NCBI GenBank assembly: GCA_965112735.1
Contig: OZ218965.1
Span: 1,240,001-1,304,000, forward strand
Source: Phaeosaccion multiseriatum
Lineage: Eukaryota > Protista > Ochrophyta, other classes
Reading direction: 5' to 3'
DNA length: 64,000 nucleotides
Shown here: positions 7,527 to 62,205 of the stretch, piece after piece
How the letters are laid out: each line of letters begins with the position of its first letter
Position numbering within the stretch: position 1 is the first letter of the stretch
Notes under the pieces: model-generated
What the model was told of the DNA's origin: nothing
Seen by the model: the letters and a program-made list of their open reading frames with translations, nothing else
Database searches by the model: none
Made by a program: the position numbers and the translations under genes

Positions 7527-7602
<76 letters not shown>

Positions 7603-8771: not shown

Positions 8772-8804
<33 letters not shown>

Positions 8805-9098
8805 GAGGAGGAAGAGGGCTCGGCTTTGAAGGGAGGGCTGGGGGGAAAGGGGGGAAAGGGGGAGCACAAGGAGGACGAACACGAGGAGGAGGAGGATGAG
8901 AAGGAGGAGGAGGAGGAGGAGGAGGAGGAGGAGGAGGAGGAGGAGGAGGAGGAGGAGGAGGAGGAGGAGGAGGAGGAGGAGGAGGAGGGGGAGGAGGGGG
9001 GGGAGGAGGAGGGGGAGGAGGAGGAAACGGACGACGAAGAGACACAGCTGGAGCCAGAGCGGGGGGGGGAAGACCCGCCATCTAACGATGGAGAAGGA

Positions 9099-9132
<34 letters not shown>

Positions 9133-27102: not shown

Positions 27103-29336
27103 TCAGGCCCGAGGGGCTACGGCATCGCTCTCTGGGCGATCCCGTGCCGATCCGTCCGCTCCCCCTCCGATCGTATCACTATTTGGTGCCGATGACTCGT
27201 TTACGGCGTCTTCCTGAGCTGGCCCCTGCCCCTCGCACTGCTGCTGTATGACCAACTGCTCTTGCTGTTGGTGGTGCACCCTCCACGCCCTGTCCCGGAG
27301 CATGACGAGCAGCCCCCGCCTCTTCCACGCTGAGCAGTTGGTGATACAGGTAGAGAGGGGTGTGTTGGTTAGTCGCACCCACTCACCCTCCCCATATATA
27401 TATATATACGCCTCAACTCTCACCCGCTTCTCTCTTTCTGCGCATCCTCCTGACGGGTGCATTGATGAGCTGCGTACATATCCCCTCGTGCCCCTTTAGT
27501 TCGGCCAGCAAATGGGCGTTATAGAGGCCGTCGGCAGTCATGGTGTCTAGCTTCGCACCTCCGTCTAAGAGGAGTCGAACCACACCCTCGTGTCCACTCC
27601 GAGCTGCCAACTGTGACGCACGAGAGAGAGAGGATGGGGGGGGGGGGGAGATGAGAGAGAGGGAGAGAGGGAGGATGAGAGAGAGAGAGGGAGAGAGAGA
27701 GGAAGAGGGAGAGAAAAGGAGAGAGAGAGAGGAAGAGGGAGAGAGAGAGAGAGGGAGAAAGAGAGCGAGAGAGGGAGAGAGAGAGACAGGTAGACAAGTA
27801 GCGGAGATACAGAGAGAAGACACCCGCCACGACAGCGACAGGGGGGTGACGGAACGAACAAGGTGGGCATTGCTTGCTTTGTTTACATGTATGCGGAGAT
27901 TACACAGACTTCAGGGTATTCACCACACAGGGTGGGAGGAGAGGGGAGAGGGAGGGAGGGAGGGGGAGGGAGTGAGGGATGGAAGAAGGGAGGGAGAGGA
28001 GGAAGGGAGGAAGAGTGGGAGGGATGGAAGGAGGGATGGGATGGGGGGAGAGAAGTGAGACAATTGGTGATTCGCCTGCGCACCATGAGGGCCGAGTAGC
28101 CGCTGGTGTTGACGGTGTCGAGCGATGTGCCTGCCCCCGCCTTTAGCAGCTCCTTCACGAGCGTCTCTTCTCCGTTGTCCGAGCTAATCATCAGACTGGT
28201 GACACGTTCAGTGGCACATGGGGTGGTGGGTGGGGAGAGTCACGGGCATTGGTCACAACTCTCTCTCTCTCTCTCACTCTCTCTTTCACTCTCTCTCTCT
28301 CACTCTCTTTCACTCTCTCTCTCTCACACACACTCTCTCTCTCTCTCTCTCAGGGTCACAGGCATTGGTCCGAACTCTCTCTCTCTCTCTCTCTTCCCTC
28401 TATGGCGCCAGTCACGCACACCCTGTCGATGGGTACTGTGCCTTCGTTCTCCGCTACCCCGCCTCGCGAAGCCATGTAAGCTTCGGTACTCGCATCGGGC
28501 CCCGGTCTGCCTCCCTAGCCAACCACCACACACATACGAAATTCTGAGGTTGATTCCTACAGGGAAAAAAAGTGAAAAGATTCCCTAGCCAACTAGCACT
28601 ACAAGTGAAAAGATTGCCTAGCCAACTAGCACTACAAGTCAAAAGATTCCCTAGCCAACTGGCACTCACCAAGTCCACCCCTCACTGTCGGCCCAGCCCA
28701 GCTCTGCAGGGGAGAGGGGTGGACCGTTGAGTACTGTCTGTACCGTCGCTAAGTCCCCCTCCTTCACGGCCTTAAAGAGCTGCCGACACTTCAGAGACGC
28801 CACCTTGCGTAGCTATACCATCCCATCCGGGGGGGGGGGCAGGAGGAGGAGGGGGGGGGGTGTGGGGTGGAGGGAGGGAGGTTGTAGGGGTCAAGGCGAT
28901 GAGGAGGAGGGAGCTTGTGCGAATAATCACGAGGAGGAGGGGGATACGGGATGCAAGAGGGAGGGAGGGAAGAGTAAAGACGAGGAGAGAGAGGTTTTGC
29001 AAGAAAAAGAGGGCAGAGAGACGGGGAAGTTGTGGGGGTAACAGGTGTTGCAAATAAAGAGGGTGGAGAGAGTGACGCCGTGGGGGCAAGGATGAGGAGG
29101 AGGGGGGTATTGCAAGGTCATCGGCACAGAGGAAGGGAAGGGAGAGGTTGCGAGCGTAGAGAGAATAATTCCGAAGAGAAACGGCGGAAAAGGTGTTCCC
29201 TCACCATCGACGTCGTGCATCCGCATCCCGCATGGTGGTGGTGGTGGTGGTGGTGGTGGTGGTCATGGTCCTGCGCGAGAAACTCGTGGATGTAGTTGTC
29301 GTGCGTCGCCGGCGTCTGGTGCCGTACGAATCGCAT
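27103..29336 (-). CDS. Ankyrin-repeat protein with N-terminal poly-His
   Basis: Exons 29336-29205 (MRFVRHQ...HHHHHHHHHHAGCGCTTSM), ~28813-28670 (LFKAVKEGDLATVQTVL...DSEGWT), ~28195-28085 (LMISSDNGEETLVKELLKAGA...GYSALM), ~27610-27424 (LAARSGHEGVVRLLLDGGA) and ~27329-27103 (AWKRRGLLVMLR...). The 3' end is uncertain. Confidence 0.8.
28573..28668. repeat. 33-bp tandem repeat x3 in intron
   Basis: AAAAGATT(C/G)CCTAGCCAACTAGCACTACAAGT repeated three times next to the donor site. Confidence 0.85.
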
Positions 29337-29754: not shown

Positions 29755-30747
29755 ATGGGTGGTGCCAGTGCGGCTGCTTCAGCTGCTCTCGGCCCCGTTG
29801 CCCTTGCCGTAAGTGAGGGGAGCGATGCTCAGACCCTCGAAGCTTGTGAACAGGCCCTGGCTCAGGCTGTATTGCTCTGTAGCGTGATGGAGTGGACTGG
29901 TGGGGGCCACGACTTGTTCGTAGCGGCGGTGAGCAAGGAGTGGAAGGAGCACTACAGACGTCTTCATTGGGCCAAGACAACCCGGGTCAGGAGTGTGGTT
30001 GAGTCTGTGGAGCGTTTGAGGTGGGCCAGGAAGTACGGGTATGAGCTGAGTGTGAAGACTTTTGAGGCTGCGGCACAGTACGGAGATGTGCGTATTTGCA
30101 AGGCTCTTCACAGCATGGGGTGTGCCTGGGGTTGGACCGTATCCAAGGTTACGGTGCGGAATGAAAGGCACGGACTGAGCATCCTCCAATGGCTGCGAGT
30201 GGAGGACCTGCCAAACAAGAAGTTTCGCCCGTGGGATCAGCTCCGTCTTTGTTGCGAAGCTGGCGAGTGCGGGAATTTGGAAGTTCTTACGTGGCTGCTG
30301 TCCGACGAGTTTGAGGGCCCTCCTCAATCTATTATGTGGATGGCGGCTGTAAAGGCGGGGCACTTCAGCGTGTTGGACACGATTGTGCACCATCCCAAGG
30401 TCAGAGCTGAGATGGAGATGACAAAGAACTACAACTGGTGGAGGGATGGGGCTAAATGGGCGGCCGCGGAAGGCAATCTGGAAGTGCTGCAGTGGCTCCA
30501 TGCAAACGCACGGGAGCTGTGCAGGTGGAATGCAGATGTCTGCTATTTGGCAGTCCAGAAGGGCAAGAGTCTCGCTATCCTCAAGTGGCTCCGCTCGGAG
30601 GAGGTCATGTGTCCCTGGGACAGCAGGGCATGCCCACAGGTCGTGGAAAACACACAAGGTCCTGAATGGGGTATCCCCCCTGCCGCCCTTGAGGAGATGA
30701 AGCAGTGGGTGCACGCCAATGGTCACCCCTGCGAGTGCGAGGACTGA
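29755..30747 (+). CDS. F-box-like + ankyrin-like repeat protein, subfamily A copy 1 (intronless)
   Basis: 330-aa ORF with LFVAAVSKEWK (F-box-like end), repeats AA..G.L.VL.WL....cpWd and C-terminal HPCECED. Confidence 0.85.
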   Translation: MGGASAAASAALGPVALAVSEGSDAQTLEACEQALAQAVLLCSVMEWTGGGHDLFVAAVSKEWKEHYRRLHWAKTTRVRSVVESVERLRWARKYGYELSVKTFEAAAQYGDVRICKALHSMGCAWGWTVSKVTVRNERHGLSILQWLRVEDLPNKKFRPWDQLRLCCEAGECGNLEVLTWLLSDEFEGPPQSIMWMAAVKAGHFSVLDTIVHHPKVRAEMEMTKNYNWWRDGAKWAAAEGNLEVLQWLHANARELCRWNADVCYLAVQKGKSLAILKWLRSEEVMCPWDSRACPQVVENTQGPEWGIPPAALEEMKQWVHANGHPCECED

Positions 30748-31874
30748 GTGACCAGGGCATACAGCGTGGCCCCTCCTGCGTCGAGCACCGTCTTGTTTTG
30801 TTTCGCACACGGTGCCATAGAAAGGGGCTTCACTTCAGCCCCTCTCTCTTTGTAAGAAGTGTGCTTCTTCTTCCAGCCGAATCAGTGCATACCGTAGCAT
30901 AACGAATGTATAGATACATACGTCGACTTTGGGCCTAGCACCGGCTTCCTTTCTCCGAAACTCTGAGAAGAGCCTCACACGCCTCTCGCCGCGTAACGGC
31001 AGTACTTGCACTGATATCAGCCAATGGCTTTGGATCGCCCTCTCCTCCTCCTCCTCCTCCCCTCCCTTACTGCGTTGCTTTCCTCAACCCCCCGCGGAGA
31101 GCGCCAAGCAGGAAGTCTATTGTGTGAGCTCTTCATTGCCTGAACCCTGATCACGCATGCCCCCACCAGTCCTGGCCCATTCCGCTTGCCTCGCTGCTCT
31201 GCACGGGCGGGTGGGCGCCTTCCCCAAAGCCAGGGCCGCAATGCTCTGCCCTGCTCCACTCCCAAACGCTCTGGAGGAGCGCATGCAATAGCAATAGTGG
31301 GGCAGCACCACCACTCACACTCACAGTAGAAGGAACACCTCAACTCCACTCTGCAAAAACAACACCCCTATCATACAGACTGCCTTCCCCTTCTGTCCCC
31401 CCTCCGTCTCAGTCTCATCCTGGACCTCATTCCTCTTCCTCTCCGCCTCCTCCTTCCCCCTCCTGTCCAACTTCATCTCCTCTGCGGCTTCGCTCAGCGG
31501 CCCCGCCCGCGCTGCCCCCATCTGACGTGTGTACCCCGTGCTTGCATCATCCCTGAAGCACCACCGTCTTGCTCGAGTGGAGCAGCCAAAGGGGGCTGGG
31601 TCGGTCTGGGTGACGGGGTGTGGGGTCGGGGCAAGAGGGGGCAGGCAGAGGCGGGGAAAGGGGCAGTGAAGAGGATCAGAGAACAGATAGCAGCAGGAGG
31701 AGCTGCAGACAGGCATTCGGTAACCTCAAAAGCACCGCCAAGCCAGAGAGCACTCCCATCCGCCCCGCTCACCTCGACTTGTTGCCCCCCCTATTCGAAG
31801 AGGCTGTCGCCGCCTTCTCAGGGCCGCCTCCCTTCCTACCCGTCCTGCCTCCGTCTTGAAACGCTTCCTGCCAG

Positions 31875-32897
31875 TCAGTCCTCGCAGTCGCAGGGGTGAC
31901 CATTGTCGTGCACCCACTGCTTCATCTCCTCAAAGGCGGCAGGGGACATATCCAAGTCATCACCATCTGCGTCTTTCCAGAACTGTGGGCATGCCAACTC
32001 GTCCCAGGGACACATGACCTCCTCCGAGCGGAGCCACTTCAGGACAGAGAGGCTCTTACCGCTACAAACTGCTTCACCACAGACATCTTCATCCCACGTG
32101 CACAGCTCCCGTGCGTTTGCATGCAGCCACTGCAGCACTTCCACATTGCCTTCCGCGGCCGCCCTGAGAGCCCCATTCCTCCACACGCTGTCCCCCTCAG
32201 CCGCCTCCATCTCAGCTCTGACCTTGGGATGGTGCACAAGCATGTCCAACGCGCGAATGCGCCCCCCGTCTACAGCCCCCGACCACATACCAGGTAGAGG
32301 GCCCTCAAACTCGTCGGACAGCAGCCACGTAAGAACCTCCACATTGCCGCACTCGCCAGCTGAGTACCCGACGGTATCCTGTGACCAAGGACCTTGCTCC
32401 TTGTTGGGGAGATCCTCGGATCGCAGCCACTTGAGAATACGCAGTCCATGCCTAGCATTCCTCACAGCCGCCCTACAGGCCATTGTATCCCAGGGGCAGT
32501 GCATGCGGTGAAGCAGCTCCTCGCACACGCTCACATCTCCGTACTCTGCCGCCGCTCTGAAAGTGTCCACACTCAGCTCGTACCCACATTTCTCCTTGGC
32601 CCACCGCAAGCACCTGACAGACTCCACCACGCTTGGAAGGGAAGTCTCGGCTGAAGGGTGGGCCACGCTGTAGTGCTCTTTCCATTTCTTACATACGGTG
32701 GCGGTGAAGACGTGGCGGCCCTTCCCCACAAGGGCCACGATTCTCTGCAGGACCTCCTCCATTCCCAGGGCCTTGGCACTGGCCACGTACGTCTCCTGCA
32801 CAGCACCTTCTCCCTCGGCAGTCTCCGCGGTATAACTTGTCACACCTTCCTCCGTGCCCAGGCGCTGCCTCTTGGAGGCATCCTCTGCCTCTGCCAT
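31875..32897 (-). CDS. F-box-like + ankyrin-like repeat protein, subfamily B copy 1 (intronless)
   Basis: First ATG at 32897 (MAEAEDASKRQRL); LGMEEVLQRIVALVGKGRHVFTATVCKKWK; same repeat type; ends HPCDCED. Confidence 0.85.
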   Translation of the reverse strand: MAEAEDASKRQRLGTEEGVTSYTAETAEGEGAVQETYVASAKALGMEEVLQRIVALVGKGRHVFTATVCKKWKEHYSVAHPSAETSLPSVVESVRCLRWAKEKCGYELSVDTFRAAAEYGDVSVCEELLHRMHCPWDTMACRAAVRNARHGLRILKWLRSEDLPNKEQGPWSQDTVGYSAGECGNVEVLTWLLSDEFEGPLPGMWSGAVDGGRIRALDMLVHHPKVRAEMEAAEGDSVWRNGALRAAAEGNVEVLQWLHANARELCTWDEDVCGEAVCSGKSLSVLKWLRSEEVMCPWDELACPQFWKDADGDDLDMSPAAFEEMKQWVHDNGHPCDCED

Positions 32898-33484
32898 GGC
32901 GTGTGTGTTGCCCACTTCGCCAGAGTATCTGCAGCGCTTCAAAGAAATGACTAATGGCCCCACCTTCTCTGTGCTATCACGCAGCAATGGCGGCCTTGTT
33001 TGCGCCGGCCCCGCGCTCCGTCTCTTCGGGTCGTGTGGCGACTACAGAGCTCGACTACCAGGCCGACGCTGAACGACCAACTTGCCTTGTATCCCTCTCA
33101 ACTCACTCTCCACGCACCACCTCCGTTCCTCTTCGACCAAGCAGCAGGTAGGAGTGCGGCGCTGAAGAGTGCAGGCTGGAGGAGGCTTAGAGCAGCCAAG
33201 GGCCTGCTGGGAGATGGTGATGGAGTCCATCGAAGTCAACTTGCCCTCCACACTCTTCGGCTCTTCGGGGGGGGGGGGGGGGGTCTCGGCAAAGGCCCAA
33301 CAGCAGGGGAGGTACCGATACCGCCTTTTACTCACACTGCGTGTCATTTCCGTCCTGTCTTTCCCCCTCCCCCTTCCCTTCTCTCGTCGTACCAGGCTTC
33401 GCTGAGGAAAGCTAAAAGGCTTCTTCCCCCCCATCACCTGCCCCACACCGCACATCATACGTGCCAACCAGTCATCCAGAAGAC

Positions 33485-34576
33485 ATGGACGGACCGAGCC
33501 GAAAGCATGGCGGCAAAAGGCTCCAGCCAGCTCCACCCACCGACTCCTCGGCAGGGGAAGTATGTCTGACTTTGCATGGAGGCGGTGGTGCCGGTGCCGC
33601 TTTACTACCTACTCCCGGCCCCGCCGACCTTGCTGGAGGCGAGGGAAGCGATGCTCAGACCTTCGAAGCTTGTGAAGAGGCTCTGGCCCAGGCTGTATTG
33701 CTCAGTAGCGTGATGGAGTGGACTGGTGGGGGCCACGACTTGTTCGTAGCGGCGGTGAGCAAGGAGTGGAAGGAGCACTACAGACGTCTTCATCCGGCCA
33801 AGACAACCCGGATCAGGAGTGTGGTTGAGTCTGAGGAGCGTTTGAGGTGGGCCAGGAAGTACGGGTATGAGCTGAGTGTGAAGACTTTTGGGGCTGCGGC
33901 ACAGTACGGAGACTTGCGTATTTGCAAGGCTCTTCACAGCATGGGGTGTGCCTGGGGTTGGGCCGTATGCAAGGTTACGGTGCGGAATGAAAAGCACGCA
34001 CTGAGCATCCTCCAATGGCTGCGAGCGGAGGACCTGCCCAACAAGGAGCGGTGCCCGTGGGAGCAGCACTTCATTTGTGGCGAAGCTGGCAAGTGCGGCC
34101 ATGTGGAGGTTCTTACGTGGCTGCTGTCCGACGAGTTTGAGGGCCCTCCTCAATTTGATATGTGGGTGGGGGCTGTGCAGGCGGGGCGCATTCGCGTGCT
34201 GGACATGCTTGTGCACCATCCCAAGGTCAGAGCTGAGATGGAGGCGGCTGAGGGGGACAGCGAGTGGAGGTGGGGGGCTCTCTGGGCGGCCCAGGAAGGC
34301 AATCTGGAAATGCTGCAGTGGCTGCATGCAAACGCACGGGAGCTGTGCAGGTGGGATGAAGATGTCACTACTGCAGCAGTTTATAGCGGTGAGAGCCTCT
34401 CTGTCCTGAAGTGGCTCCGCTCGGAGGAGGTCATGTGTCCCTGGGACAGAAGGGCATGCCCAAAAGTCGTGAAAAACCAATTTGGTCAATATGGATGGGA
34501 TATGGCCCCTGCCGCCTTTGAGGAGATGAAGCAGTGGGTACACGACAATGGTCACCCCTGCGAGTGCGAGGACTGA
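33485..34576 (+). CDS. F-box-like + ankyrin-like repeat protein, subfamily A copy 2
   Basis: ATG at 33485 (MDGPSRKHGGKRL); intact paralog of A1. Confidence 0.87.
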   Translation: MDGPSRKHGGKRLQPAPPTDSSAGEVCLTLHGGGGAGAALLPTPGPADLAGGEGSDAQTFEACEEALAQAVLLSSVMEWTGGGHDLFVAAVSKEWKEHYRRLHPAKTTRIRSVVESEERLRWARKYGYELSVKTFGAAAQYGDLRICKALHSMGCAWGWAVCKVTVRNEKHALSILQWLRAEDLPNKERCPWEQHFICGEAGKCGHVEVLTWLLSDEFEGPPQFDMWVGAVQAGRIRVLDMLVHHPKVRAEMEAAEGDSEWRWGALWAAQEGNLEMLQWLHANARELCRWDEDVTTAAVYSGESLSVLKWLRSEEVMCPWDRRACPKVVKNQFGQYGWDMAPAAFEEMKQWVHDNGHPCECED

Positions 34577-35662
34577 GTGACCACGGCAGACAGCGCGGCC
34601 CCTCCTGCGTCAAGCATCGTCTTGTTTCGCACACGGTGCCATAGAAAGGGGCTTCACTTCAGCCCCTCTCTCTTTGTTACTAGTGTGTTTCTTCTTCCAG
34701 CCGAATCAATGGATACCATAAAGCTTAACACGTACGTATAATATATAGACAGTTTGACTTGGCCCTTTCCCTCTGCGAAGCCTTTGGTCGAGCAGTGCCA
34801 CGCACCCCTCTCCAATGACATATTTGAAACGCCCTTCCCCTTTCTCATCTTCTACTGCTGCCCTTATTCAACCCCCCGCGGAGAGCGCCAAGCAGGAAGT
34901 CTATTGTGTGAGCTCTTCATTGCCTTAACCCTAATCACGCATGCCCCCACAAGGCCTGGCCCATTCCGCTTGCCTCGCTGCTCTGCACGGGCGGGTGGGC
35001 GCCTTCCCCAAAGCCAGGGCCGCAACGCTCTGCCCTGCTCCACTCCCAAACGCTCTGGAGGAGCGCATGCAATAGCAATAGTGGGGCAGCACCACCACTC
35101 ACACTCACAGTAGAAGGAACACCTCAACTAACTCCACTTTGCAAAAACAACACCCCTATCATACAGACTGCCTTCCCCTTCTGTCCCCCCTCCGTCTCAG
35201 TCTCATCCTGGACCTCATTCCTCTTCCTCTCCGCCTCCTCCTTCCCCCTCCTGTCCTTCTTCATCTCCTCTGCGGCTTCGCTCAGCTGCCCCGCCCGCGC
35301 TGCCCCCATCTGACGTGTGTACCCCGTGCTTGCATCATCCCTGAAGCACCACCGTCTTGCTCGAGTGGAGCAGCCAAAGGGGGCTGGGTCGGTCTGGGCG
35401 ACGGGCTGTGGGGTCGGGGCAAGAGGGGGCAGGCAGAGGCGGGGAAGGGGGCAGGGAAGAGGATCAGAGAACAGATAGCAGCAGAACAAGCAGCAGATGG
35501 GCATTCGGTAACCTCGAAAGCACCGCCAAGCCAGAGAGCACTCCCATCCGCCCCGCTCACCTCGACTTGTTGCCCCCCCTATTCGAAGAGGCTGTCGCCG
35601 CCTTCTCAGGGCCGCCTCCCTTCCTACCCGTCCTGCCTCCGTCTCGAAACGCTTCCTGCCAG

Positions 35663-36700
35663 TCAGTCCTCGCAGTCGCAGGGGTGACCATTGGCGTGCA
35701 CCCACTGCTTCATCTCCTCAAAGACGGCAGGGGGCATATCCCAGTCATCACCATATGCGTCTTTCCAGTACTGTTGGCATGCGCGCTCGTCCCAGGGACA
35801 CATGACCTCCTCCGAGCGGAGCCACTTCAGGACAGAGAGGCTCCCCCACTTTGTTGCTGCAGTAGTGACACCTTCATCCCACGTGCACAGCTCCCGTGCG
35901 TTTGCATGTAGCCACTGCAGCACTTCCAGATTGCCTTCCTGGGCCGCCCAGAGAGCCCCCCTCGTCCATCCCACAGCCGCCCCCATCTCAGCTACCTTCG
36001 GATGGTGCACAAGCATGTCCAACGCGCGAATGCACCCCCTCTTTACAGCCCCCTTCCACATATAATATTGAGGAGGGCCCTCAAACTCGTCGGACAGCAG
36101 CCACGTAAGAACCTCCACATTGCCGCACTCGCCAGCTGAGTACCCGACCCAATCCTGTGACCAAGGACCTTGCTCCTCGTTGGGGAGGTCCTCGGATCGC
36201 AGCCACTGGAGAAAACGCAGTCCATGCAGCCATTGGAGAATACGCTGTCCATGCCTAGCATTCCTCACAGCCGCCCTACAGGCCGTTGTATCCCAGGGGC
36301 AGTGCATGTGGTGAAGCAGCTCCTCGCACACGCTCACATCTCCGTACTCTGCCGCCGCTCTGAAAGTGTCCACACTCAGCTCGTACCCACATTTCTCCTT
36401 GGCCCACTGCAAGCACCTGACAGACTCCACCACGCTTGGAAGGGAAGTCTCGGCTGAAGGGTGGGCCACGCTGTAGTGCTCTTTCCATTCCCTACATACG
36501 GTGGCGGTGAAGACGTGGCGGCCCTTCCCCACAAGGGGCATGATTTTCTGCAGGACCTCCTCCATTCCCAGGGCCTTGGCACTGGCCACGTACGTCTCCT
36601 GCACAGCACCTTCTCCCTCGGCAGTCTCCGCGGTACAACTTGTCACACCTTCCTCCGTGCCCAGGCGCTGCCTCTTGGAGGCATCCTCTGCCTCTGCCAT
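35663..36700 (-). CDS. F-box-like + ankyrin-like repeat protein, subfamily B copy 2
   Basis: ATG at 36700; intact paralog of B1 with an in-frame 27-nt duplication and small in-frame deletions. Confidence 0.87.
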   Translation of the reverse strand: MAEAEDASKRQRLGTEEGVTSCTAETAEGEGAVQETYVASAKALGMEEVLQKIMPLVGKGRHVFTATVCREWKEHYSVAHPSAETSLPSVVESVRCLQWAKEKCGYELSVDTFRAAAEYGDVSVCEELLHHMHCPWDTTACRAAVRNARHGQRILQWLHGLRFLQWLRSEDLPNEEQGPWSQDWVGYSAGECGNVEVLTWLLSDEFEGPPQYYMWKGAVKRGCIRALDMLVHHPKVAEMGAAVGWTRGALWAAQEGNLEVLQWLHANARELCTWDEGVTTAATKWGSLSVLKWLRSEEVMCPWDERACQQYWKDAYGDDWDMPPAVFEEMKQWVHANGHPCDCED

Positions 36701-37298
36701 GGCGTGTGTGTTGCCCACTTCGCCAGAGTATCTGCAGCGCTTCAACGAAATGACTAATGGCCCCACCTTCTCTGTTCCATCATGCAGCAATGGCGGCCTT
36801 GTTTCCGCCGGCCCCGCGCTCCGTCTCTTCGGGTGGTGTGGCGACTACAGAGCTCGACTACCAGGCCGACTCTGAACGACCAACTTGCCTTGTATCCCTC
36901 TCAACTCACTCTCCACGCACCACCTCCGTTCCTCTTCGACCAAGCAGCAGGTAGGAGTGTGGCGCTGTAGAGTGCAGGCTGGAGGAGGCTTAGAGCAGTC
37001 GAGGCCGTGCTGGGAGATGGTGATCGAGTCCATCGAAGTCAACTTGCCCTCCACACTCTTCGGCTCTTCGGGGGGGGGGGGGTGTCTCGGCAAAGGCCCA
37101 ACAGCAGGGGAGGTACCGATGCCGCCTTTTCCTCACACTGCGTGTCATTTCCGTCCTGTCAATCCCCCTCCCCCTTCCCTTCTCTCGTCGTACCAGGCTT
37201 CGCTGAGGAAAGCTAAAGGGCTTCTTCCCCCCCATCACCTGCCCCGCACCGCGCATCATAAGTGTCAAGCAGTCATCTAGAGTGGGACCGCGGAAGAC

Positions 37299-38384
37299 AT
37301 GGACGGACCGAGCCGAAAGCATGGCGGCAAAAGGCTCCAGCCAGCTCCACCCACCGACTCCTCGGCAGGGGAAGTATGTCTGACTTTGCATGGAGGCGGT
37401 GGTGCCGGTGCCGCTGTGGCGGCTTCTCCCGGTCCCGCTGCACTTGCTGGAGGCGAGGGAAGCGATGCTCAGACCTTCGAAGCTTGTGAAGAGGCTCTGG
37501 CCCAGTCTGTAATGCTCAGTAGCGTGATGGAGTGGACTGGTGGGGGCCACGACTTGTTCGTAGCGGCGGTGAGCAAGGAGTGGGAGGAGCACTACAGACG
37601 TCTTCATCCGGCCAAGACAACCCGGATCAGGAGTGTGGTTGAGTCTGAGGAGTGTTTGAGGTGGGCCAGGAAGTACGGGTATGAGCTGAATGTGAAGACT
37701 TTTGAGGCTGCGGCACAGTACGGAGACTTGCGTATTTGCAAGGCTCTTCACAGCATGGGGTGTGCCTGGGGTTTGACCGTATGCAAGGTTGCGGTGAGGA
37801 ATGAAAAGCACGGACTGAGCATCCTCCAATGGCTGCGATCCGAGGACCTACCCAGCAAGGAGCGGTGCCCGTGTGAGCAGCACTTAATTTGTGGCCAAGC
37901 TGGCAAGTGCGGCCATGTGGAGGTTCTTACGTGGCTGCTGTCCGACGAGTTTGAGGGCCCTCCTCAATTTGATATGTGGGTGGGGGCTGTGCGGGCGGGG
38001 CGCATTCGCGTGTTGGACATGCTTGTGCACCATCCCAAGATCAGAGCTAAGATGGAGGCGGCAGGTAACTACAGCGGGTGGAGGTGGGGGGCTAGCTGGG
38101 CGGCCCAGGAAGGCAATCTGGAAGTGCTGCAGTGGCTGCATGCAAACGCACGGGAGCTGTGCAGGTGGGATGAAGATGTCTGTTTTGAAGCAGTTTGTAG
38201 CGGTAAGAGCCTCTCTGTCCTGAAGTGGCTCCGCTCGGAGGAGGTCATGTGTCCCTGGGACAGAAGGGCATGCCCACGAGTCAACGCACATGGCCCATAT
38301 GGATGGGATATGCCCCCTGCCGCCTTTGAGGAGATGAAGCTGTGGGTGCACGCCAATGGTCACCCCTGCGAGTGCGAGGACTGA
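37299..38384 (+). CDS. F-box-like + ankyrin-like repeat protein, subfamily A copy 3
   Basis: 361-aa intact ORF; paralog of A1/A2. Confidence 0.87.
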   Translation: MDGPSRKHGGKRLQPAPPTDSSAGEVCLTLHGGGGAGAAVAASPGPAALAGGEGSDAQTFEACEEALAQSVMLSSVMEWTGGGHDLFVAAVSKEWEEHYRRLHPAKTTRIRSVVESEECLRWARKYGYELNVKTFEAAAQYGDLRICKALHSMGCAWGLTVCKVAVRNEKHGLSILQWLRSEDLPSKERCPCEQHLICGQAGKCGHVEVLTWLLSDEFEGPPQFDMWVGAVRAGRIRVLDMLVHHPKIRAKMEAAGNYSGWRWGASWAAQEGNLEVLQWLHANARELCRWDEDVCFEAVCSGKSLSVLKWLRSEEVMCPWDRRACPRVNAHGPYGWDMPPAAFEEMKLWVHANGHPCECED

Positions 38385-39466
38385 GTGACCACGGCAGACA
38401 GCGCGGCCCCTCCTGCGTCAAGCATCGTCTTGTTTCGCACACGGTGCCATAGAAAGGGGCTTCACTTCAGCCCCTCTCTCTTTGTGAGAAGTGTGCTTCT
38501 TCTTCCAGCCGAATCAATGGATACCATAAAGCTTAACACGTACGTATAATATATAGACAGTTTGACTTGGCCCTTTCCCTCTGCGAAGCCTTTGGTCGAG
38601 CAGTGCCACGCACCCCTCTCCAATGACTTATTTGAAACGCCCTTCCCCTTTCTCATCTTCTACTGCTGCCCTTATTCAACCCCCCGCGGAGAGCGCCAAG
38701 CAGGAAGTCTATTGTGTGAGCTCTTCATTGCCTTAACCCTAATCACGCATGCCCCCACAAGGCCTGCCCCATTCCGCTTGCCTCGCTGCTCTGCACGGGC
38801 GGGTGGGCGCCTTCCCCAAAGCCAGGGCCGCAATGCTCTGCCCTGTTCCACTCCCAAACGCTCTGGAGGAGCGCATGCAATAGCAATAGTGGGGCAGCAC
38901 CACCACTCACACTCACAGTAGAAGGAACACCTCAACTCCACTTTGCAAAAATAACAACCCTATCATACAGACTGCCTTCCCCTTCTGTCCCCCCTCCGTC
39001 TCATTCTTACCCTGGACCTCATTCCTCTTCCTCTCCGCCTCCTCCTTCCCCCTCCCGTCCTTCTTCATCTCCTCTGCGGCTTCGCTCAGCGGCCCCGCCC
39101 GCGCTGCCCCCACCCGACGTGTGTACCCCGTGCTTGCATCATCCCTGAAGCACCACCGTCTTGCTCGAGTGGAGCAGCCAAAGGGGGCTGGGTCGGTCTG
39201 GGTGACGGGCTGTGGGGTGGGGGCAAGAGGGGGCAGGCAGAGGCGGGAAAGGGAGCAGTGAAGAGGATCAGAGAACAGATAGCAGCAGAACAAGCAGCAG
39301 ATGGGCATTCGGTAACCTCAAAAGCACCGCCAAGCCAGAGAGCACTCCCATCCGCCCCGCTCACCTCGACTTGTTGCCCCCCCTATTCGAAGAGGCTGTC
39401 GCCGCCTTCTCAGGGCCGCCTCCCTTCCTACCCGTCCTGCCTCCGTCTCGAAACGCTTCCTGCCAG

Positions 39467-40492
39467 TCAGTCCTCGCAGTCGCAGGGGTGACCATTGTCG
39501 TGCACCCACTGCTTCATCTCCTCAAAGGCGGCAGGGGGCATATACCAGAGATCATCGACTCTGTCTTTAATGTACTCCGGGCATGCCGACTCGTCCCAGG
39601 GACACATGACCTCCTCCGAGCGGAGCCACTTCAGGACAGAGAGGCTCCTCCCGTGGAAAATTGCTTCAAAACAGACATCTTCATCCCACCTGCACAGCTC
39701 CCGTGCGTTTGCATGCAGCCACTGCAGCACTTCCAGATTGCCTTCCTCGGCCGCCCTGAGAGCCCCATCCCTCCACCCGCTGAGGTCCCCTGCCGCCTCC
39801 ATCTCAGCTCTGACCTTCGGATGGTGCACAAGCATGTCCAACGCGCGAATGCACCCCGCCTGCACAGCCCCCTCCCACATATAATATAGAGGAGGGCTCT
39901 CAAACTCGTCGGACAGCAGCCACGTAAGAACCTCGACATTGCCGCACTCGCCAGCTTCGTGCCCGACGTCATTCTGTGACCAAGGACCTTGCTCCTTGTT
40001 GGGGAGGTCCTCGGATCGCAGCCACTGGAGAATACGCAGTCCATGCCTAGCATTCCTCACAGCCGCCCCACAGGCCGTTGTATCCCAGGGGCAGTGCATG
40101 CGGTGAAGCAGCTCCTCGCACACGCTCACATCTCCGTACTCTGCCGCCGCTCTGGAAGTGCCCACACTCAGCTCGAACCCACATTTCTCCTTGGCCCACT
40201 GCAAGCACTTGACAGACTCCACCACGCTTGGAAGGGAAGTCTCGGCTGAAGGGTGGGCCATGCTGTAGTGCTCTTTCCATTCCCTACATACCGTGGCGGT
40301 GAAGACGTGGCGGCCCTTCCCCACAAGGGGCATGATTTTCTGCAGGACCTCCTCCATTCCCAGGGCCTTGGCACTGGCCACGTACGTCTCCTGCACAGCA
40401 CCTTCGCCCTCGGCAGTCTCCGCGGTATAACTTGTCACACCTTCCTCCGTGCCCAGGCGCTGCCTCTTGGAGGCATCCTCTGCCTCTGCCAT
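39467..40492 (-). CDS. F-box-like + ankyrin-like repeat protein, subfamily B copy 3
   Basis: ATG at 40492 (MAEAEDASKRQRL); intact paralog of B1/B2. Confidence 0.87.
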   Translation of the reverse strand: MAEAEDASKRQRLGTEEGVTSYTAETAEGEGAVQETYVASAKALGMEEVLQKIMPLVGKGRHVFTATVCREWKEHYSMAHPSAETSLPSVVESVKCLQWAKEKCGFELSVGTSRAAAEYGDVSVCEELLHRMHCPWDTTACGAAVRNARHGLRILQWLRSEDLPNKEQGPWSQNDVGHEAGECGNVEVLTWLLSDEFESPPLYYMWEGAVQAGCIRALDMLVHHPKVRAEMEAAGDLSGWRDGALRAAEEGNLEVLQWLHANARELCRWDEDVCFEAIFHGRSLSVLKWLRSEEVMCPWDESACPEYIKDRVDDLWYMPPAAFEEMKQWVHDNGHPCDCED

Positions 40493-41392
40493 GGCGTGTG
40501 TGTTGCCCACTTCGCCAGAGTATCTGCAGCGCTTCAAAGAAATGACTAATGGCCCCACCTTCTCTGTGCTATCATGCAGCAATGGCGGCCTTGTTTGCGC
40601 CGGCCCCGCGCTGCCTCCGTCTCTTCGGGTCGTGTGGCGACTACAGATGTCCACTATCATCAGCATCACCATCACTACACTCTTCTTTCCGCTGTTACTG
40701 AGAGGTCAATTCCTCCGGGGTCAAGCACCATTTCTCCCTTACTTCAATGAGGCCGGCACTCATTTATTTACGCGGGAAATGCTCACATCACCCTGCTGCT
40801 GCTGCTGTTGCTGTCTTTGGTTGTGGGAAGGGAGAAGAAGAAGGAGGAGGCTTTGCGGCCTTCGTCGGCATCACTCATTACGGCACTTTGCCTGTTTTCT
40901 GAACTCTCTTTCTTCCCGCTGTTATTGAGAGGTCAATTCCTTCCTTGAATACCTGCCGGGGCCGACGCTGAACGACCAACTTGCCTTGTATCCCTCTCAA
41001 CTCACTCTCCACGCACCACCTCCGTTCCTCTTCGACCAAGCAGCAGGTAGGAGTGTGGCGCTGAAGAGTGCAGGCTGGAGGAGGCTTAGAGCAGTCGAGG
41101 CCGTGCGGAGAGATGGTGATCGAGTCCATCGAATTCAGCTTCCATCCCCTCCCCTTCTCTTCGGCTCTTCGGGGGGGGTCTCGGCAAAGGCCCAACAGCA
41201 GGGGAGGTACCGATGCCGCCTTTTCCTCACACTGCGTGTCATTTCCGTCCTGTCAATCCCCCTCCCCCTTCTCTTCTCTCGTCGTACCAGGCTTCGCTGA
41301 GGAAAGCTAAAAGGCTTCTTCCCCCCCATCACCTGCCCCACACCGCACATCATACGTGCCAACCAGTCATCCAGAGTGGGACCGCAGAAGAC

Positions 41393-42481
41393 ATGGACGT
41401 ACCGAGCCGAAAGCATGGCGGCAAAAGGCTCCAGCCAGCTCCACCCACCGACTCCTCGGCAGGGGAAGTATGTCTGACTTTGCATGGAGGCGGTGGTGCC
41501 GGTGCCGCTGTGGCGGCTTCCCCCGGTCCCGCTGCCCTTGCTGGAGGCGAGGGAAGCGATGCTCAGACCTTCGAAGCTTGTGAAGAGGCTCTGGCCCAGG
41601 CTGTAATGCTCCGTAGCGTGATGGAGTGGACTGGTGGGGGCCACGACTTGTTCGTAGCGGCGGTGAGCAAGGAGTGGAAGGAGCACTACAGACGTCTTCA
41701 TTGGGCCAAGACAACCCGGATCAGGAGTGTGGTTGAGTCTGAGGAGCGTTTGAGGTGGGCCCTGAAGTACGGGTATGAGCTGAGTGTGAAGACTTTTGAG
41801 GCTGCGGCACAGTACGGAGACTTGCGTATTTGCAAGGCTCTTCACAGCATGGGGTGTGCCTGGGGTCGGGCCGTATGCATAGCTGCGGTGAGGAATGAAA
41901 GGCACGCACTGAGCATCCTCCAATGGCTGCGAGCGGAGGACCTGCCCAACAAGGAGCGGTGCCCGTGGCGGCTGTACTCCATTTGTGGCGAAGCTGGCAA
42001 GTGCGGCCATGTGGAGGTTCTTACGTGGCTGCTGTCCGACGAGTTTGAGGGCCCTCCTGAATTTGATATGTTGGAGGGGGCTGTAAAGGCGGGGCGCATT
42101 CGCGTGTTGGACATGGTTGTGCACCATCCCAAGGTCAGAGCTGAGATGGAGGCGGCTGAGGGGGACAGCGAGTGGAGGTGGGGAGATTTCTGGGCAGCCA
42201 GGCAAGGCAATCTGGAAGTGCTGCAGTGGCTGCATGCAAACGCACGGATCGAGCTGTGCACGTGGGATGAAGATGTCTGTGCTGAAGCAGTTCGTGGCGG
42301 TAAGAGCCTCTCTGTCCTGAAATGGCTCCGCTCGGAGGAGGTCATGTGTCCCTGGAACGAGTCGGCCTGCCCACAGTACTTTGAAGGAGTGATTCATGGA
42401 TGGGATATGCCCCCTGCCGCCTTTGAGGAGATGAAGCAGTGGGTGCACGCCAATGGTCACCCCTGCGACTGCGAGGACTGA
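41393..42481 (+). CDS. F-box-like + ankyrin-like repeat protein, subfamily A copy 4
   Basis: ATG at 41393 (MDVPSRKHGGKRL); intact; carries the B-type C-terminus (CDCED). Confidence 0.87.
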   Translation: MDVPSRKHGGKRLQPAPPTDSSAGEVCLTLHGGGGAGAAVAASPGPAALAGGEGSDAQTFEACEEALAQAVMLRSVMEWTGGGHDLFVAAVSKEWKEHYRRLHWAKTTRIRSVVESEERLRWALKYGYELSVKTFEAAAQYGDLRICKALHSMGCAWGRAVCIAAVRNERHALSILQWLRAEDLPNKERCPWRLYSICGEAGKCGHVEVLTWLLSDEFEGPPEFDMLEGAVKAGRIRVLDMVVHHPKVRAEMEAAEGDSEWRWGDFWAARQGNLEVLQWLHANARIELCTWDEDVCAEAVRGGKSLSVLKWLRSEEVMCPWNESACPQYFEGVIHGWDMPPAAFEEMKQWVHANGHPCDCED

Positions 42482-47738: not shown

Positions 47739-50700
47739 ATGAGGTTTGGGGGCTTTGAGGGCAATGAGGTGAGCTTTCTTCGATGATACCATCCACGCGC
47801 ATCTCGCTAGGCTCATGAAGCCATAGCCATGGGGAGCTGAGGTGGTTCGCCGGTCGTGCTCCAGCCTTTTTCATCTCGCTCCCCGGAAAGCTCATATGCT
47901 CTGAGTGATTTTTTGACATGACAGCAGACTGCCCCGCCCCTGTTTTTGTTGCTGTGATGTCCTTGTCATCCACACTCTAACCCTCCTCCCACAAACTCCT
48001 CCTGTCGGACCACACACACACCAGGAGCGAGAGCTCCTCGATGCCATCGAAGAGGACGCCGATGGAGAGTGCGCAGACCGCCCCAATGCCGCCGTGGTGG
48101 AGGCGGTGCAGGCCTTCGTGGCAGCCAAGGGCTCCGAGGCACTGGACAAGCCTCTCCACCCGGGAAACATGACTGCCCTCCAAGCCGCCATCGCCGCTGG
48201 CAAGGGCGGCATCGTCCCCCTGCTCCTGGCAGAGGGTGCCTCTGCGGACGCGCACGACAAAGACGTGCTCCCCAACCAGGGCAGCCGAACTCCGCTAACC
48301 CCTCTCGCGATGGCGGCCGAGGGGGGAGACGAGGAGATGGTCCGAGCTCTGCTGGCAGGTGGCGCCACCGTCAACCTCGCCTCTGTCAAGGGCCACACCC
48401 CTCTGCTGCAGGTAACCAAAGCTATGCCTTGGAACTCCCTAATCATCCTGTTGCTGCTGCTACTGCTGCTGCTGCTGGACTTGTTAGTGTGCTGTACTAT
48501 CCCCAACCCACTGGCTCCTCCCTCTTCCTTGTGCTTGTGCTTGTAGGCGGCGATGAACGGTCACCCTGGTGTGGTAGGGCTCCTCCTCTCTGCCGAGGCC
48601 GCAGTGGACGTACAGAACGATGAGCGTTGCACTCCACTCATCATGGCGGCGTTAGAGGGGCACCAAGATGTGAGTAGCGGTGTTCGTAACCGTAAGCGTA
48701 CGTTGTGTAACCGTGTAAACCGTCTCAACGCAGTTGTCCTGTCTTCGTTTGTGTGCATCACGCACCACTCTGCCCACCACATGCTCTGGCGCCATTCATA
48801 CACACGTAACCTTACATACACCCGTGCCTCGTCACTCCCAATCTCTATCTCTCTCTCTATATATATATATATATCTCTCCCTCTCTCTCTGTCTCTATCT
48901 CTATCTCTATCACTCTCTCTGTCTCTCTCTCTATACTCTCTCTCTCCATCTCTCTCGCGCTCTCTCATCTGATCCTCATCTCTCTCTCTCTCTCTCTACA
49001 TATATATGTATGTCAGGTGGTGCAACAGCTGCTCGACGCCGGTGCCGACGTGAACCGAGCGAGCTCCACCACCCCCCTCGCCGCCGCCGTGCTGGGCAGG
49101 CAGTCGCACGTGGTTCACCAACTCATCAACGTAGGGGCAGACGTGGGCGGGGGGGGGCTCGAACCCACGCCGCTCTTCCTCGCCACTGCCGTGGGGGAAG
49201 AAGGGCTCGTGGAGACTCTGCTGGCGGCAGGGGCAAAGGCGATCGGCATGGGTCTGTTGTCCTTGGCGTGCGATGGTGGCCACGCGGCCATCGTAGGCCT
49301 GCTCCTGGGGGCCGGGGTGAAGGCGGACGAGTGCAGGGAGGGAGAGACACCGCTCTACATCTCCGCGGCCAAGGGGGACGCCGCGATTGTGGGCAAGCTG
49401 CTCGAGGCAGGGGCGGCCCCCGACGAGACCAAGAATGGCATGACGCCGCTCTTTGTTGCCGCCATGAAGGGACATGCCGATGCGGTGACCCTCTTGGTCA
49501 AGGGAGGGGCGGAGGTGGACCAGGCTAGCACGGAAGGCCTCACGCCCCTGCAGACGGCGGCGGCGGCAGGCCACTCCGACACAGTCAAGGCACTGCTGGC
49601 GTGTGGGGCCACGGTGGGGCAGAGGGGTCTGGATGGGGTGGGTGGGCTGCACTTGGCGGCTGCGGCAGGGCACGATGAGGTGAGTGGGGGAAGTGGTGAG
49701 GGTGAGGGGGAGGAGGGGAGGGAGGGAGAGGGAGGGGGGAGGAGGGAGGGAGAGGGAGGGAGGGAGGAGGGAAAGGGAAGGAGGGGTGGTGGTTTTTTCT
49801 TTCTTCCCATCTTACGCAAAAAGCTTTGGCATCCCGCAGCACTCGAATTCCCCCTGTGTTTCGTAGTATCCGACATGGGCTTTCGGTGATCGATTTTATT
49901 ATCCCCCTGCTGAAACCTAAAGCTATACGTAACCCTTACGTAATCTAAAGCATACGTAACCCTTCCGTACGTTCCTGCCTAACACGCACAGGTGGTGCGG
50001 CAGCTGCTCGCGGCCGGTGCTCCGGTGCACACACAGGATACACAGGGAGACACCCCGCTGTACAAGGTAGGTGACGTCATTATGCTTACGTAATGGTTAC
50101 GTACTTGTCGGGAGTGGTGTGTGTGTGTGTGTGTACGGAGAGGAGAGGTGTTGCCTCGCCTCACGGCTGTTTTAGGCCCCAGCCTCCCCCACTTCCGCCC
50201 CCTTCCCTCCCCGCACTGGCTCAGTGCCGCACGCATCCCCTCTGTGCCCCCCCCCCCCCCCCCCCCCCTTTCTCCCTTCCCCCTCTCTCTTACCTCTCCC
50301 CCGACTCCCTCGCTCCTCCCTATCCCACCTCTCCCCCTCCCCTAATACAAAACACTTATGTATATATATATCCTTCTCCCTCTCCTCCCGTCCCCTCCCC
50401 TCCCCTCCCCTCCCCTCCCTTCTCCCTCCCCTCCCCTCTCTCCTTCTCCCTCCCCTCCCCTCCCCTCTCCTCTCAGGCTGCACGCGTGGGTCACAGCGGC
50501 GTGGTGAACCAACTCCTCGCGGCAGGAGCCATCGCCAATGGAGAGGCGGGCGCAGCCGATGGGGCACGAGCCCTGGCCAAAGCCTGCTCCGAAGGGCGAT
50601 CCGCTTGTGTGCACGAGTTGTTGACATACCGCGCCGATGTCAAGAAGGCCATCGCACACGCGAGGAGGAAGAGCTGGCCGCATGTAGGGAAGCGACTCGC

Positions 50701-51148
50701 AGCGCAGGCCAAGGAGCACGAGACGAGGCAGGCTCAGCTTGAGGTGGTGCGGGTGAGGGACGCCAAGAAGCAGGCCGTGGACTTGGAGGCCTACTTGGAC
50801 GGTCTGCCCGTTGTTGGGCTCATGCGCTTCGTGGACGGGGCGCTCTTCCCGGGGGGGCCAAACGCTCGCCCGAGGGGGGAAGAGGAGGAGGGGGAGGGGG
50901 CGCAGTTGGGTGTACATGGCTACCAGCACCAGCACCAGCACCAGCACCGCCCCCAGCCGGGGCCTTGCATGGGTCAAGGACACCAGGGGGGGCATCAGCC
51001 TTGTTGTGGGGAGGGTCAGGGTCAGGGTCAGCAGGGTCATGATCAGGAGCGGTCTCTCGGGGAACGGGGTGTGCGTGCGTGCGTGCTCTTGACCATGGCG
51101 GAGGAGATGGTGGGGGGGACCTGTAGTGAGACGGAGGAGAGGCCGTGA
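47739..51148 (+). CDS. Multi-ankyrin-repeat protein (>10 repeats)
   Basis: Putative micro-exon 47739-47768 (MRFGGFEGNE), then ~48025-48411, 48547-48669, 49018-49679, 49992-50067 and 50477-51148, with repeated TPL..AA..GH..VV..LL.AGA.V motifs. Start and 3' end are tentative. Confidence 0.85.
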
Positions 51149-52826: not shown

Positions 52827-55519
52827 TTAGCTGCCCTCCCCCCCTAGTCCCTTTCTCGAGACCCTTTTGGGCGAGCCCCCTCGGGCATTCGCATTCGACC
52901 CCCCCCTGGGGTCCGCCACAACCCCCTCGGGCAGAGGCAGCTGCAGCGACAGCACCCCCCCCCCGCCCCCTGCGGCAAGCTTGTTGGCGGCCCTGAGGGT
53001 CTTGTTCTTGAGCTCGTCCCTCGTCAGGGGCCTCTCGTCGTCCTCCACCTCGTCCTCCTCCCCTGGCACATAAGGGGATGGCAGTGGATGGGCAGGGAGG
53101 AAGATGATGATGATGGTGATGGGAGTGGATGGGCAGAGAGAGAGATGGCAGTGGATGGATGGGCACGCGAGTGTCAGCAGGGTCGGTCCAGGCGTATGGG
53201 CACACGGAGGGGCACAAGACGCTTAAGGGCTGCCTCCCATCCCTCCCTCCCTCCCTCTTTCTCTAATGTGTACGTATGTGTGTGTATGTATGCATGTGTG
53301 TGCGTGTGTGTGTGTGCGTGTGTGTGCGTGTGCGTGTGTGTGTGCGTGCGTGTATGTGTGTGCGTGCGTGTGTTGTGTGTGCACGTGCTCTTCCCACCCA
53401 CCTGAGCTGTAATCGTCCCAACTCGGAGGCTGCACCACGAGCTTGCGGCTCCCTGTCGCTGCGGTGGATTGGGAGAGGGATGGCAGTGGATGGTGGTGGA
53501 TGGCAGTGGATGGCAATGGATGGCAATGGATGGCAGTGGATGGGGAGGGGATGGGGAGGGGCAGCGGTGTATGGATGGAGTGTCGCAGTGGGACGAGGGA
53601 GAGGGGGGGGAGGGGAGGGATGAAGCCACCGGATAGCAGTGGATAGAGAGGGGTGGGGAAGATGGCAGTGGATGGGGGTGGGGGCGTTACGTTACATGTA
53701 CAAATGTAGAGCGGGCTTAATGTCTGAGGGCATGCTCGCCACTTTCCTCTCTCTGAGCCTCTGTCTAAGGGCATGCTCGCCACTTTCCACTCTCTGAGCC
53801 TCTCTCTGAGGCTCTGTCTGAGGGCATGCTCGCCACTTTCCTTTCTCTGAGGCTCTCTCGGAGTCTCTCTCTGGTCCAGTCTTCCCCTTGCTCGGGCCCA
53901 CTCCCCTCCTCTCTCTACTCCGCCCCCCCCCCTCCTCTCCCTGCTCCAGCCCCCCACCCTCTCCCTGCTCCTGCCTCCCCCTCCCCTCCCCTCCCCTCTC
54001 TTGCCCTCTCTGGCCCTCTCTGGCCTACCTGGATTGGGAGAAGCGCTGCTCCCCCCAGCGCCTGCTCCCATGAGTCCCTCGTCGCTGCTGCCCCCGTTGG
54101 CTGCCATCCCCCCCTGTCCTGACACCACCTGTGCCTCCTCTGTGGGGCGTGAAATGTTCTGCGAGGACGCATACGTGGCGAGAATCTCTCCCGTTCGCTG
54201 CTCGATGAGGCCGAGGTACTGCAGCATGTTGGACTCCGTCACGCCTGTCACAGATGGCACGCGATGTGGGGGGGGTTGGTAGGACAGAGGGTGGAGGAGC
54301 AGCCAAGTGAGAGTCAGAGGGGTGTGGGGTGTGGAACATTTTTGTTCTTGTTTTGCGACTCTCACCAACCCCTGCCGACGCACCAACACACCCACCAATG
54401 CACTCCCTCCTCTGTCCCGACACCCCATACCCACCCACACCGCTCCGTCCCGACGCCATGTCCTGACACCGCTTACCCCTAACCACCCGCTGTCCTGACA
54501 CCACTTACCCCCAACCACCCTCTGTCCTGACACCGCTTACCCCTAACCACCCTCTGTCCTGACACCACTTACCCCCAACCACCCTCTGTCCTGACACCGC
54601 TTACCCCTAACCACTCTCTGTCCTGACACCACTTACCCCTAACCACCCTCTGTCCTGACACCGCTTACCCCTAACCACCCGCTGTCCTGACACCGCTTAC
54701 CCCTAACCACCCTCTGTCCTGACACCGCTTACCCCTAACCACCCGCTGTCCTGACACCGCTTACCCCTAACCACCCGCTGTCCTGACACCACTTACCCCT
54801 AACCACCCTCTGTCCTGACACCGCTTACCCCTAACCACCCTCTGTCCTGACACCACTTACCCCCAACCACCCTCTGTCCTGACACCGCTTACCCCTAACC
54901 ACTCTCTGTCCTGACACCACTTACCCCTAACCACCCTCTGTCCTGACACCGCTTACCCCTAACCACCCGCTGTCCTGACACCGCTTACCCCTAACCACCC
55001 TCTGTCCTGACACCGCTTACCCCTAACCACCCGCTGTCCTGACACCGCTTACCCCTAACCACCCTCTGTCCTGACACCGCTTACCCCTAACCACCCTCTG
55101 TCCTGACACCGCTTACCCCTAACCACCCGCTGTCCTGACACCGCTTACCTTGGTTTCCGAGCACCTCCTCCATGGTGCCGCTCGCACCTCCGCCCGACGC
55201 GATGCGCGTGAAGATCCCGTGGATGCCCGTCTGGCAGTGGGCGGATGGTAGGGGATGGCAGGGGATGGCAGGGCATGGCAGTCGATGGCAGGGGAGGGCA
55301 GGGGAGGGGAGGGGATGGTAGTGGATGGTAGTGGATGGCAGTGGATGGCAGGGGATGGCAGTGAGATGAGAGTGGACGGCAGTGGATGGCAGTGGATGGG
55401 TGCTTGAGGGTCGTGGGCACGGATCTGCGCAGGGCCTTTCATTCGTATGCATATTTCATCTCAGCAGCTCGGCAGGTCAGGTTGGGCAGGCAGCGTGTAT
55501 GGGTAGGCATATGGGCAGG

Positions 55520-62117: not shown

Positions 62118-62149
<32 letters not shown>

Positions 62150-62170
62150 ACTCTGTCTGCCCAAGCCTCC

Positions 62171-62205
<35 letters not shown>

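Follow-up and report, generated by a model that had tools for sequence, protein, structure and literature searches.

A 64,000-nucleotide (nt) stretch of the Phaeosaccion multiseriatum contig OZ218965.1 (positions 1,240,001 to 1,304,000; the whole stretch is hereafter the window) contains an array of seven F-box-like/ankyrin genes that belong to two subfamilies, A and B. Segments of the 3' half of these genes have passed between A and B by non-reciprocal gene conversion, a conclusion that is well supported. The pattern is probably accounted for by partial homogenisation across the whole family, through ordinary conversion combined with diversifying selection. A preliminary description of the same DNA had proposed that the two arms of each tail-to-tail A/B pair shuffle patches with one another and so generate diversity. 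This proposal is partly confirmed: the observations behind it are mostly real, but a pair-specific generator is not supported.

The array spans positions 29755-42481 in the order A1(+) B1(-) A2(+) B2(-) A3(+) B3(-) A4(+), with alternating strands, and is built from a 3.8-kb unit in tandem. The seven genes are intact, with open reading frames, and are apparently intronless; the indels among them are all in frame and stops are absent.

29755-30747 (+): A1, F-box-like/ankyrin; the most divergent copy, with its own 5' flank and a shorter N-terminus
31875-32897 (-): B1, 340 aa
33485-34576 (+): A2, 363 aa counted from the likely ATG
35663-36700 (-): B2, with an in-frame 27-nt duplication at about 36227-36253 that copies part of a repeat-3 helix
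37299-38384 (+): A3, 361 aa
39467-40492 (-): B3, 341 aa
41393-42481 (+): A4, 362 aa; without a downstream B partner, and with a B-type C-terminal segment

The 5' halves are old and the 3' halves are homogenised

The A and B genes are homologous across the entire aligned coding region; their 5' halves are homologous too, only old. A changepoint was located at aligned nt 437-442 (34081 in A2, 36140 in B2, 37895 in A3 and 39959 in B3), just past the inner helix of ankyrin repeat 4. Identity between A and B rose from about 61% in the 5' part to 82-89% in the 3' part. The strong 5' difference and the similar 3' tails of the preliminary description were thus recovered, although the arms measured ~495 nt and not 550 nt. 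Sites without any allele common to A and B made up 133 of the 437 positions before the changepoint vs. 2 of the 496 after it.

A homogenised arms (+), beginning with the outer helix of repeat 4 and ending at the stop codon, delimited by changepoint and synonymous rates: A1 30255-30747; A2 34081-34576; A3 37895-38384; A4 41989-42481
B homogenised arms (-), delimited by changepoint and synonymous rates: B1 31875-32364; B2 35663-36140; B3 39467-39959
34101-34148 (+, A2): framework block, DNA-identical in A2-A4 and B1/B2
34394-34447 (A2): second framework block, DNA-identical in A2, A3 and B1-B3

The synonymous difference between A and B (pS) fell from 0.65 in the first 437 aligned nt to 0.12 in the last ~495 nt, which is the level found within a subfamily. 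At fourfold sites, divergence between A and B fell from 0.37 (5') to 0.098 (3'), and divergence within subfamilies rose from 0.028 to 0.098. Since protein conservation cannot erase silent divergence, its loss in the 3' half is not due to such conservation. The 3' half is therefore less diverged between subfamilies and more diverged within them, a combination expected under neither purifying selection nor a single founding chimera.

Homology between A and B ends exactly at the TGA stop codon. Every A gene has an A-type 3' flank and every B gene a B-type 3' flank, and the two types are unrelated. Within each subfamily, flanks and 5' halves are 93-98% alike. The 3' coding identity among paralogues (81-93%) lies below the identity of the flanks among same-type units (95-98%; 90% for the first tail-to-tail spacer, owing to a 230-nt private part). 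The homogenised arms are imperfect (82-89% identity): the best-matching pair reached 90% over 379 nt, and tail-to-tail partners were 83-88% identical, short of near-perfect arms.

In the 5' half, a few A alleles match B in two-base clusters, at about 37839-37841 (A3) and 30087-30088 (A1), and these are possible micro-conversions past the boundary. The A variants of the 5' half that match the B state number 9 of 24, which is near chance.

Short segments have been exchanged between A and B genes

The pairwise homoplasy index detected recombination in the 3' half (p≤0.0015) and was not significant in the 5' half (p≈0.08). When a single tree with fitted site rates was simulated for the 3' half (400 runs), four of five statistics were never reproduced (0/400 each): compatible-site clustering, a 4-site exclusive patch, five adjacent cross-subfamily runs and overall incompatibility. 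The fifth, the number of fixed A/B differences, was compatible with a single tree. The trees of successive segments mostly reject each other in approximately unbiased (AU) tests. Two synonymous variants (aligned nt 534 and 606) cut across the A/B line, and as silent changes they are not the product of convergent selection.

The best 3' tract and the two clearest shared patches are as follows.

38187-38259 (+, A3) with 32003-32075 in the non-neighbour B1: best conversion tract, 76 identical nt, global p=0.018
34363-34378 (+, A2): VTTAA patch, common to B2 (35855-35870) only; 4 exclusive sites within 8 nt
38178-38192 (+, A3): VCFEA patch, common to B3 (39662-39676) only

The DNA motif of each of these two patches has exactly two occurrences in the window, so that VTTAA is limited to A2 and B2 and VCFEA to A3 and B3, as had been claimed. 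The peptide patches GALWAAQEG, MEAAG..SGWR, EAVCSGKS, AEGDS, HDNG and CDCED are also distributed among the genes as the preliminary description gave them. The mosaic tracts are tens of nucleotides long. Transfer was non-reciprocal, because patches are shared and not swapped, and the flanks are unexchanged.

The exchanged half carries a diversified ankyrin binding face

Pfam Ank_4 matched above its cut-off. A structure model built from 40 sequences (predicted local distance difference test, pLDDT, 89.6) is an ankyrin stack, and the structures most similar to it are those of ankyrin-repeat proteins (Z up to 14); in a viral structure library it is closest to Pandoravirus and Cedratvirus ankyrin proteins. 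This model was taken instead of a single-sequence fold, which was unusable (pLDDT 47).

33677-33790 (+, A2): F-box-like head; A and B heads differ, and the family profile matches F-box proteins
34151-34495 (+, A2): four blocks of codons under positive selection (34151-34180, 34271-34294, 34367-34387, 34451-34495), located on inner helices of repeats 5-7 and the C-cap

With the profile of the head family, 8 of 10 PDB matches are F-box proteins, among them FBXO22, TIR1, FBXW7 and FBXO4 (best E=0.008), and 8 of 25 family members weakly match Pfam F-box. The N-terminal extensions of A2-A4 (33485-33530 in A2) and B1-B3 (32860-32897 in B1) hold a short basic motif resembling a nuclear-localisation signal; A1 has none.

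Comparison of the codon models M2a and M1a gave likelihood-ratio statistics of 119 with one tree and 91 with four segment trees; the selected class comprised 14-16% of codons and had an omega of about 10. The selected codons are spaced i, i+3/4, i+7 on the inner helices of the ankyrin model. In established ankyrin structures the inner helices form the concave binding face. The inner helices of repeats 3 and 4 vary as well, though A-B exchange is scarce there. We counted 75 codon alleles at the selected sites: 48 occur in a single gene (private alleles), 18 in both A and B genes, and 9 in more than one gene of the same subfamily only. Conversion is thus not the main generator of diversity that the preliminary description had taken it to be. 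The private alleles and the variable repeat-3 and repeat-4 helices indicate that mutation and selection (or copies outside the window) supply the variants and that conversion recombines them.

Database searches found no close orthologues of the A/B genes, and an exact look-up of the proteins had none on record. Two relatives come from Chrysoparadoxa australica, the best match of each extending into the C-terminal cap. Both share this cap, and both are single genes with no inverted partner beside them. The same repeat type occurs in Chloropicon. No related locus was confirmed among metagenome and viral contigs.

Exchange is not bound to tail-to-tail partners

The tail-to-tail pairs surround spacers of ~1.1 kb that share one orientation, as first described.

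30748-31874: tail-to-tail spacer 1, 1127 nt, an A-type 3' flank plus an unrelated B-type 3' flank
34577-35662: tail-to-tail spacer 2, 1086 nt, of the same composition
38385-39466: tail-to-tail spacer 3, 1082 nt, of the same composition

The common orientation had been read as favoring conversion over inversion. It says little, because the spacers stem from recent duplication of the unit (spacers 2 and 3 are 98% identical).

If each tail-to-tail pair folded back on itself, the partner would be the preferred donor or acceptor. The arms are just 1.1 kb apart, the only exclusive cross-subfamily alleles of A2 (5 sites) and A3 (2 sites) are shared with their own partners, and A3 and B3 are identical at polymorphic sites over an 86-nt span (global p=0.06). 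We permuted the 24 possible A-B assignments with four statistics. The claim that rare variants track the physical pair did not hold, with p=0.21 for exclusive sites, 0.25 for events, 0.38 for identity and 0.17 for residual identity. No preference of an arm for exchange with its inverted counterpart was thus detected (p=0.17-0.38, three pairs), in a test that is weak with three tail-to-tail pairs only (smallest possible p 0.04).

Other results argue against a partner preference. Only 8 of the 18 exclusive A+B sites fall within tail-to-tail pairs. A1 shares three exclusive sites with B2, three with B3 and one with B1. The best tract joins the non-neighbours A3 and B1, and B1 is the nearest B gene to each of A2, A3 and A4. 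A4 lacks a downstream partner, and yet its last segment clusters with the B genes (99% bootstrap). There may be a mild partner bias; partner-biased conversion from arm to arm as the explanation of the array is nevertheless unlikely. Of the claim of arm-to-arm segmental conversion, we keep the part on A-B conversion in the 3' half and not the restriction to tail-to-tail partners.

A stronger version appears improbable to us. It would make the inverted layout a selected device, in which conversion is fast enough to give clonal lineages new binding surfaces and holds two functionally different ubiquitin-ligase heads (e.g., a degrader and a decoy) on the same changing targets, i.e., paired-adaptor immune diversification in an alga.

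One founding chimera, programmed diversification and assembly error

A single founding event could have joined a foreign 5' half to an A 3' half to give B, followed by tandem amplification, with the patches as convergent substitutions or retained ancestral states. The sharp boundary agrees with such an event, which may well explain how the boundary began, and the tree of the whole 3' half does not reject A|B. However, the chimera predicts that synonymous divergence within subfamilies is near 0.03 in the 3' half, where 0.098 was seen, and that fixed A/B differences are many, where 2 were seen. The rejection of a single tree by simulation, the identical multi-codon patches and the cross-cutting synonymous sites argue against it as well. 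As the sole cause it is already disfavored, and we give it a very low probability.

Slightly less probable still is a dedicated, programmed diversification system, of the vlsE/VSG/VLR kind or like a diversity-generating retroelement, that would produce new mosaics within a clone. The tract limits are sharp and end exactly at the stop codon, many codon changes involve several nucleotides, and G-quadruplex-like runs are present in every spacer. The array, however, is not enriched in G-quadruplex motifs: it has 7, and they are less frequent there than across the 64-kb window, which has 106. The seven intact open reading frames (ORFs), each with its own ATG, leave no room for silent cassettes or for a single expression site, and no gene fragments that could act as silent donors were found outside the seven genes in the 64-kb window. 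A scan of ten large ORFs showed neither a recombinase nor a reverse transcriptase, and there is no invariant template of the kind that marks diversity-generating retroelements. The substitution spectrum is flat across bases, with no adenine or cytosine mutational bias.

An assembly or polishing artefact, in which mixed reads of similar copies produced false shared patches, can be dismissed as highly improbable: although the public contigs of the best runs are incomplete and the A2 patch was not seen in them directly (see below), the arm copies differ by 7-19%, the indels keep the frame and no stops occur, the variation lies on one structural face, and contig assembly drops repeat variants while the contigs themselves hold further mosaics.

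Public contigs point to a larger family

In each run, 19-25 public contigs follow the gene up to its stop codon and then continue in differing flanks, and dozens more relatives were seen; the continuation into other flanks points to a large gene family. In a contig from a second study, the A4 repeat-6 patch is combined with a repeat-5 patch that all seven genes lack; this contig may equally be a paralogue or an allele. The contigs of the best runs hold just 54-65% of the sampled words. Contig joints on the opposite strand were considered as inversions; they are out of register and have single-copy depth in several runs, and were read as other paralogues.

Several results weigh against conversion acting on selected F-box-like/ankyrin genes. 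Just one GENECONV-like 3' tract falls under the global 0.05 level (A3-B1), with three more at 0.06-0.07. When the entire 3' half is taken together, its tree remains compatible with A|B; homogenisation is thus incomplete and mixing partial. The heads from the window score no F-box match individually (the B1 head gives none), and recombination can inflate omega tests. The Logan contigs neither confirm nor refute individual patches, the A2 patch not being seen directly, and no RNA run is on record.

A scenario of partial homogenisation

The probable reading, family-wide partial homogenisation by ordinary conversion with diversifying selection, can be set out as a series of steps. The starting point is two old subfamilies of intronless F-box-like/ankyrin genes, and the 3.8-kb unit was amplified in tandem; the A(BA)3 order would arise most simply from unequal crossover between direct A copies. 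Recombination between direct repeats holds flanks and 5' halves 93-98% alike within a subfamily. Ordinary ectopic conversion acts between any A and any B, only in the part that is still similar, which begins with the outer helix of repeat 4 and runs through to the stop. It would depend on homology and stall where divergence is high, and relatives elsewhere in the genome are probably donors too. The 3' half thus forms one shared pool. New residues come from point mutation and from diversifying selection on the inner-helix binding face, which has statistical support, and short conversion tracts recombine these residues beneath two different heads.

The proteins might serve as substrate adaptors of an SCF-type ubiquitin ligase for fast-changing, perhaps viral, targets, a role that we hold at even odds. 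The mechanism itself is ordinary: it is a known kind of remixing of recognition proteins, and not a pair-bound shuffling device. The array is an unusually clean small case of partial homogenisation, with a sharp boundary within the ankyrin stack that sets a subfamily-specific head and repeats 1-4 apart from a pooled, positively selected binding half. In limited literature searches we found no report of algal F-box-like/ankyrin genes with such a half-gene pattern. Intracellular recognition in stramenopiles gains a candidate that can be tested, and the variants of the ankyrin binding face make up a natural collection.

Surroundings of the array

The window is 58% GC and rich in simple repeats, and genes next to the array have GT-AG introns, which identifies the DNA as eukaryotic. 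The head-to-head intergenic regions may be shared promoters.

32898-33484: head-to-head region
36701-37298: head-to-head region (B2/A3)
40493-41392: head-to-head region

The last of these, between B3 and A4, contains an insertion of ~300 nt (40656-40955) that is missing from the other two units and has a 32-nt direct repeat inside (40683-40714 and 40910-40941); it is possibly the remnant of a small mobile element. A segment of ~230 nt in spacer 1 (30848-31080) is private to it and does not resemble spacers 2 and 3. This segment, together with A1's own 5' flank and start, marks A1 as the ancestral edge of the array. At the other end, the A-type 3' flank of A4 stops after about 118 nt (42599), ~90 nt ahead of the ATG (42688) of an EF-hand gene that, read by eye, is rich in introns and resembles calmodulin/centrin, so that the array adjoins an apparent housekeeping gene.

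Other features of the window are as follows.

7212-11198 (+): low-complexity ORF of 1328 codons, without Pfam match
28060-28190 (-): ankyrin-like coding piece unrelated to the array, read by eye
50093-51148 (+): another unrelated ankyrin-like piece, weak Pfam Ank_2 match
54331-55302: minisatellite, 32-nt period, copies near-identical
62148-63518 (-): ribosomal protein L4 exon, close to the window end

Comparison with known systems

Frequent exchange among plant Type I R genes (RGC2, R1, RPP8) homogenises non-coding DNA and not the selected coding face (PMC3679737). The array resembles them in its clustered chimeric paralogues, its frequent exchange, a homogenisation that is stronger in non-coding than in coding DNA, and diversifying selection on the binding face of a repeat. 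In contrast to these NB-LRR genes, it is of the F-box-like/ankyrin type, and A-B exchange is limited to half the gene.

Merohomogenisation is known from paired leukocyte receptors, i.e., KLRC/NKG2, Ly49 and PIR (PMC3210942), and CEACAM and the inverted Siglec/LILR clusters (PMC2832619). Here, too, conversion is confined to the ligand-binding part while the rest is divergent, tracts are patchy and the arrangement is inverted. The array genes differ in being intracellular and intronless, both heads are F-box-like, and there is no evidence of opposite outputs. The array boundary also lies inside the repeat stack, with repeats 1-4 specific to the subfamily.

Inverted gene pairs and palindromes are kept alike by conversion in human Y P6 (PMC3723533) and in convergent or divergent pairs of Caenorhabditis (PMC1803023). 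The array shares with them inverted homologous arms that flank a spacer and are kept alike by conversion. In these known cases, however, the arms match almost perfectly (over 99.9% for Y) and in a partner-specific way, whereas those of the array are 82-89% identical, 0.5 kb long, coding only and not partner-specific.

F-box families of Caenorhabditis evolve fast, with positive selection on their substrate-binding domains (PMC8120010). The array genes likewise have an N-terminal F-box-like head and a positively selected C-terminal part, here predicted to bind substrate. F-box/ankyrin proteins of Chloropicon, Chrysoparadoxa and giant viruses have the repeat type of the array; the two Chrysoparadoxa relatives, as single genes without an inverted partner, lack its layout. 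Finally, Podospora HNWD (PMC2873952) and Ectocarpus ROCO/LRR genes (PMC3341825) shuffle whole repeat units or exons, whereas in the array the number of repeats is fixed and sub-repeat patches move in register.

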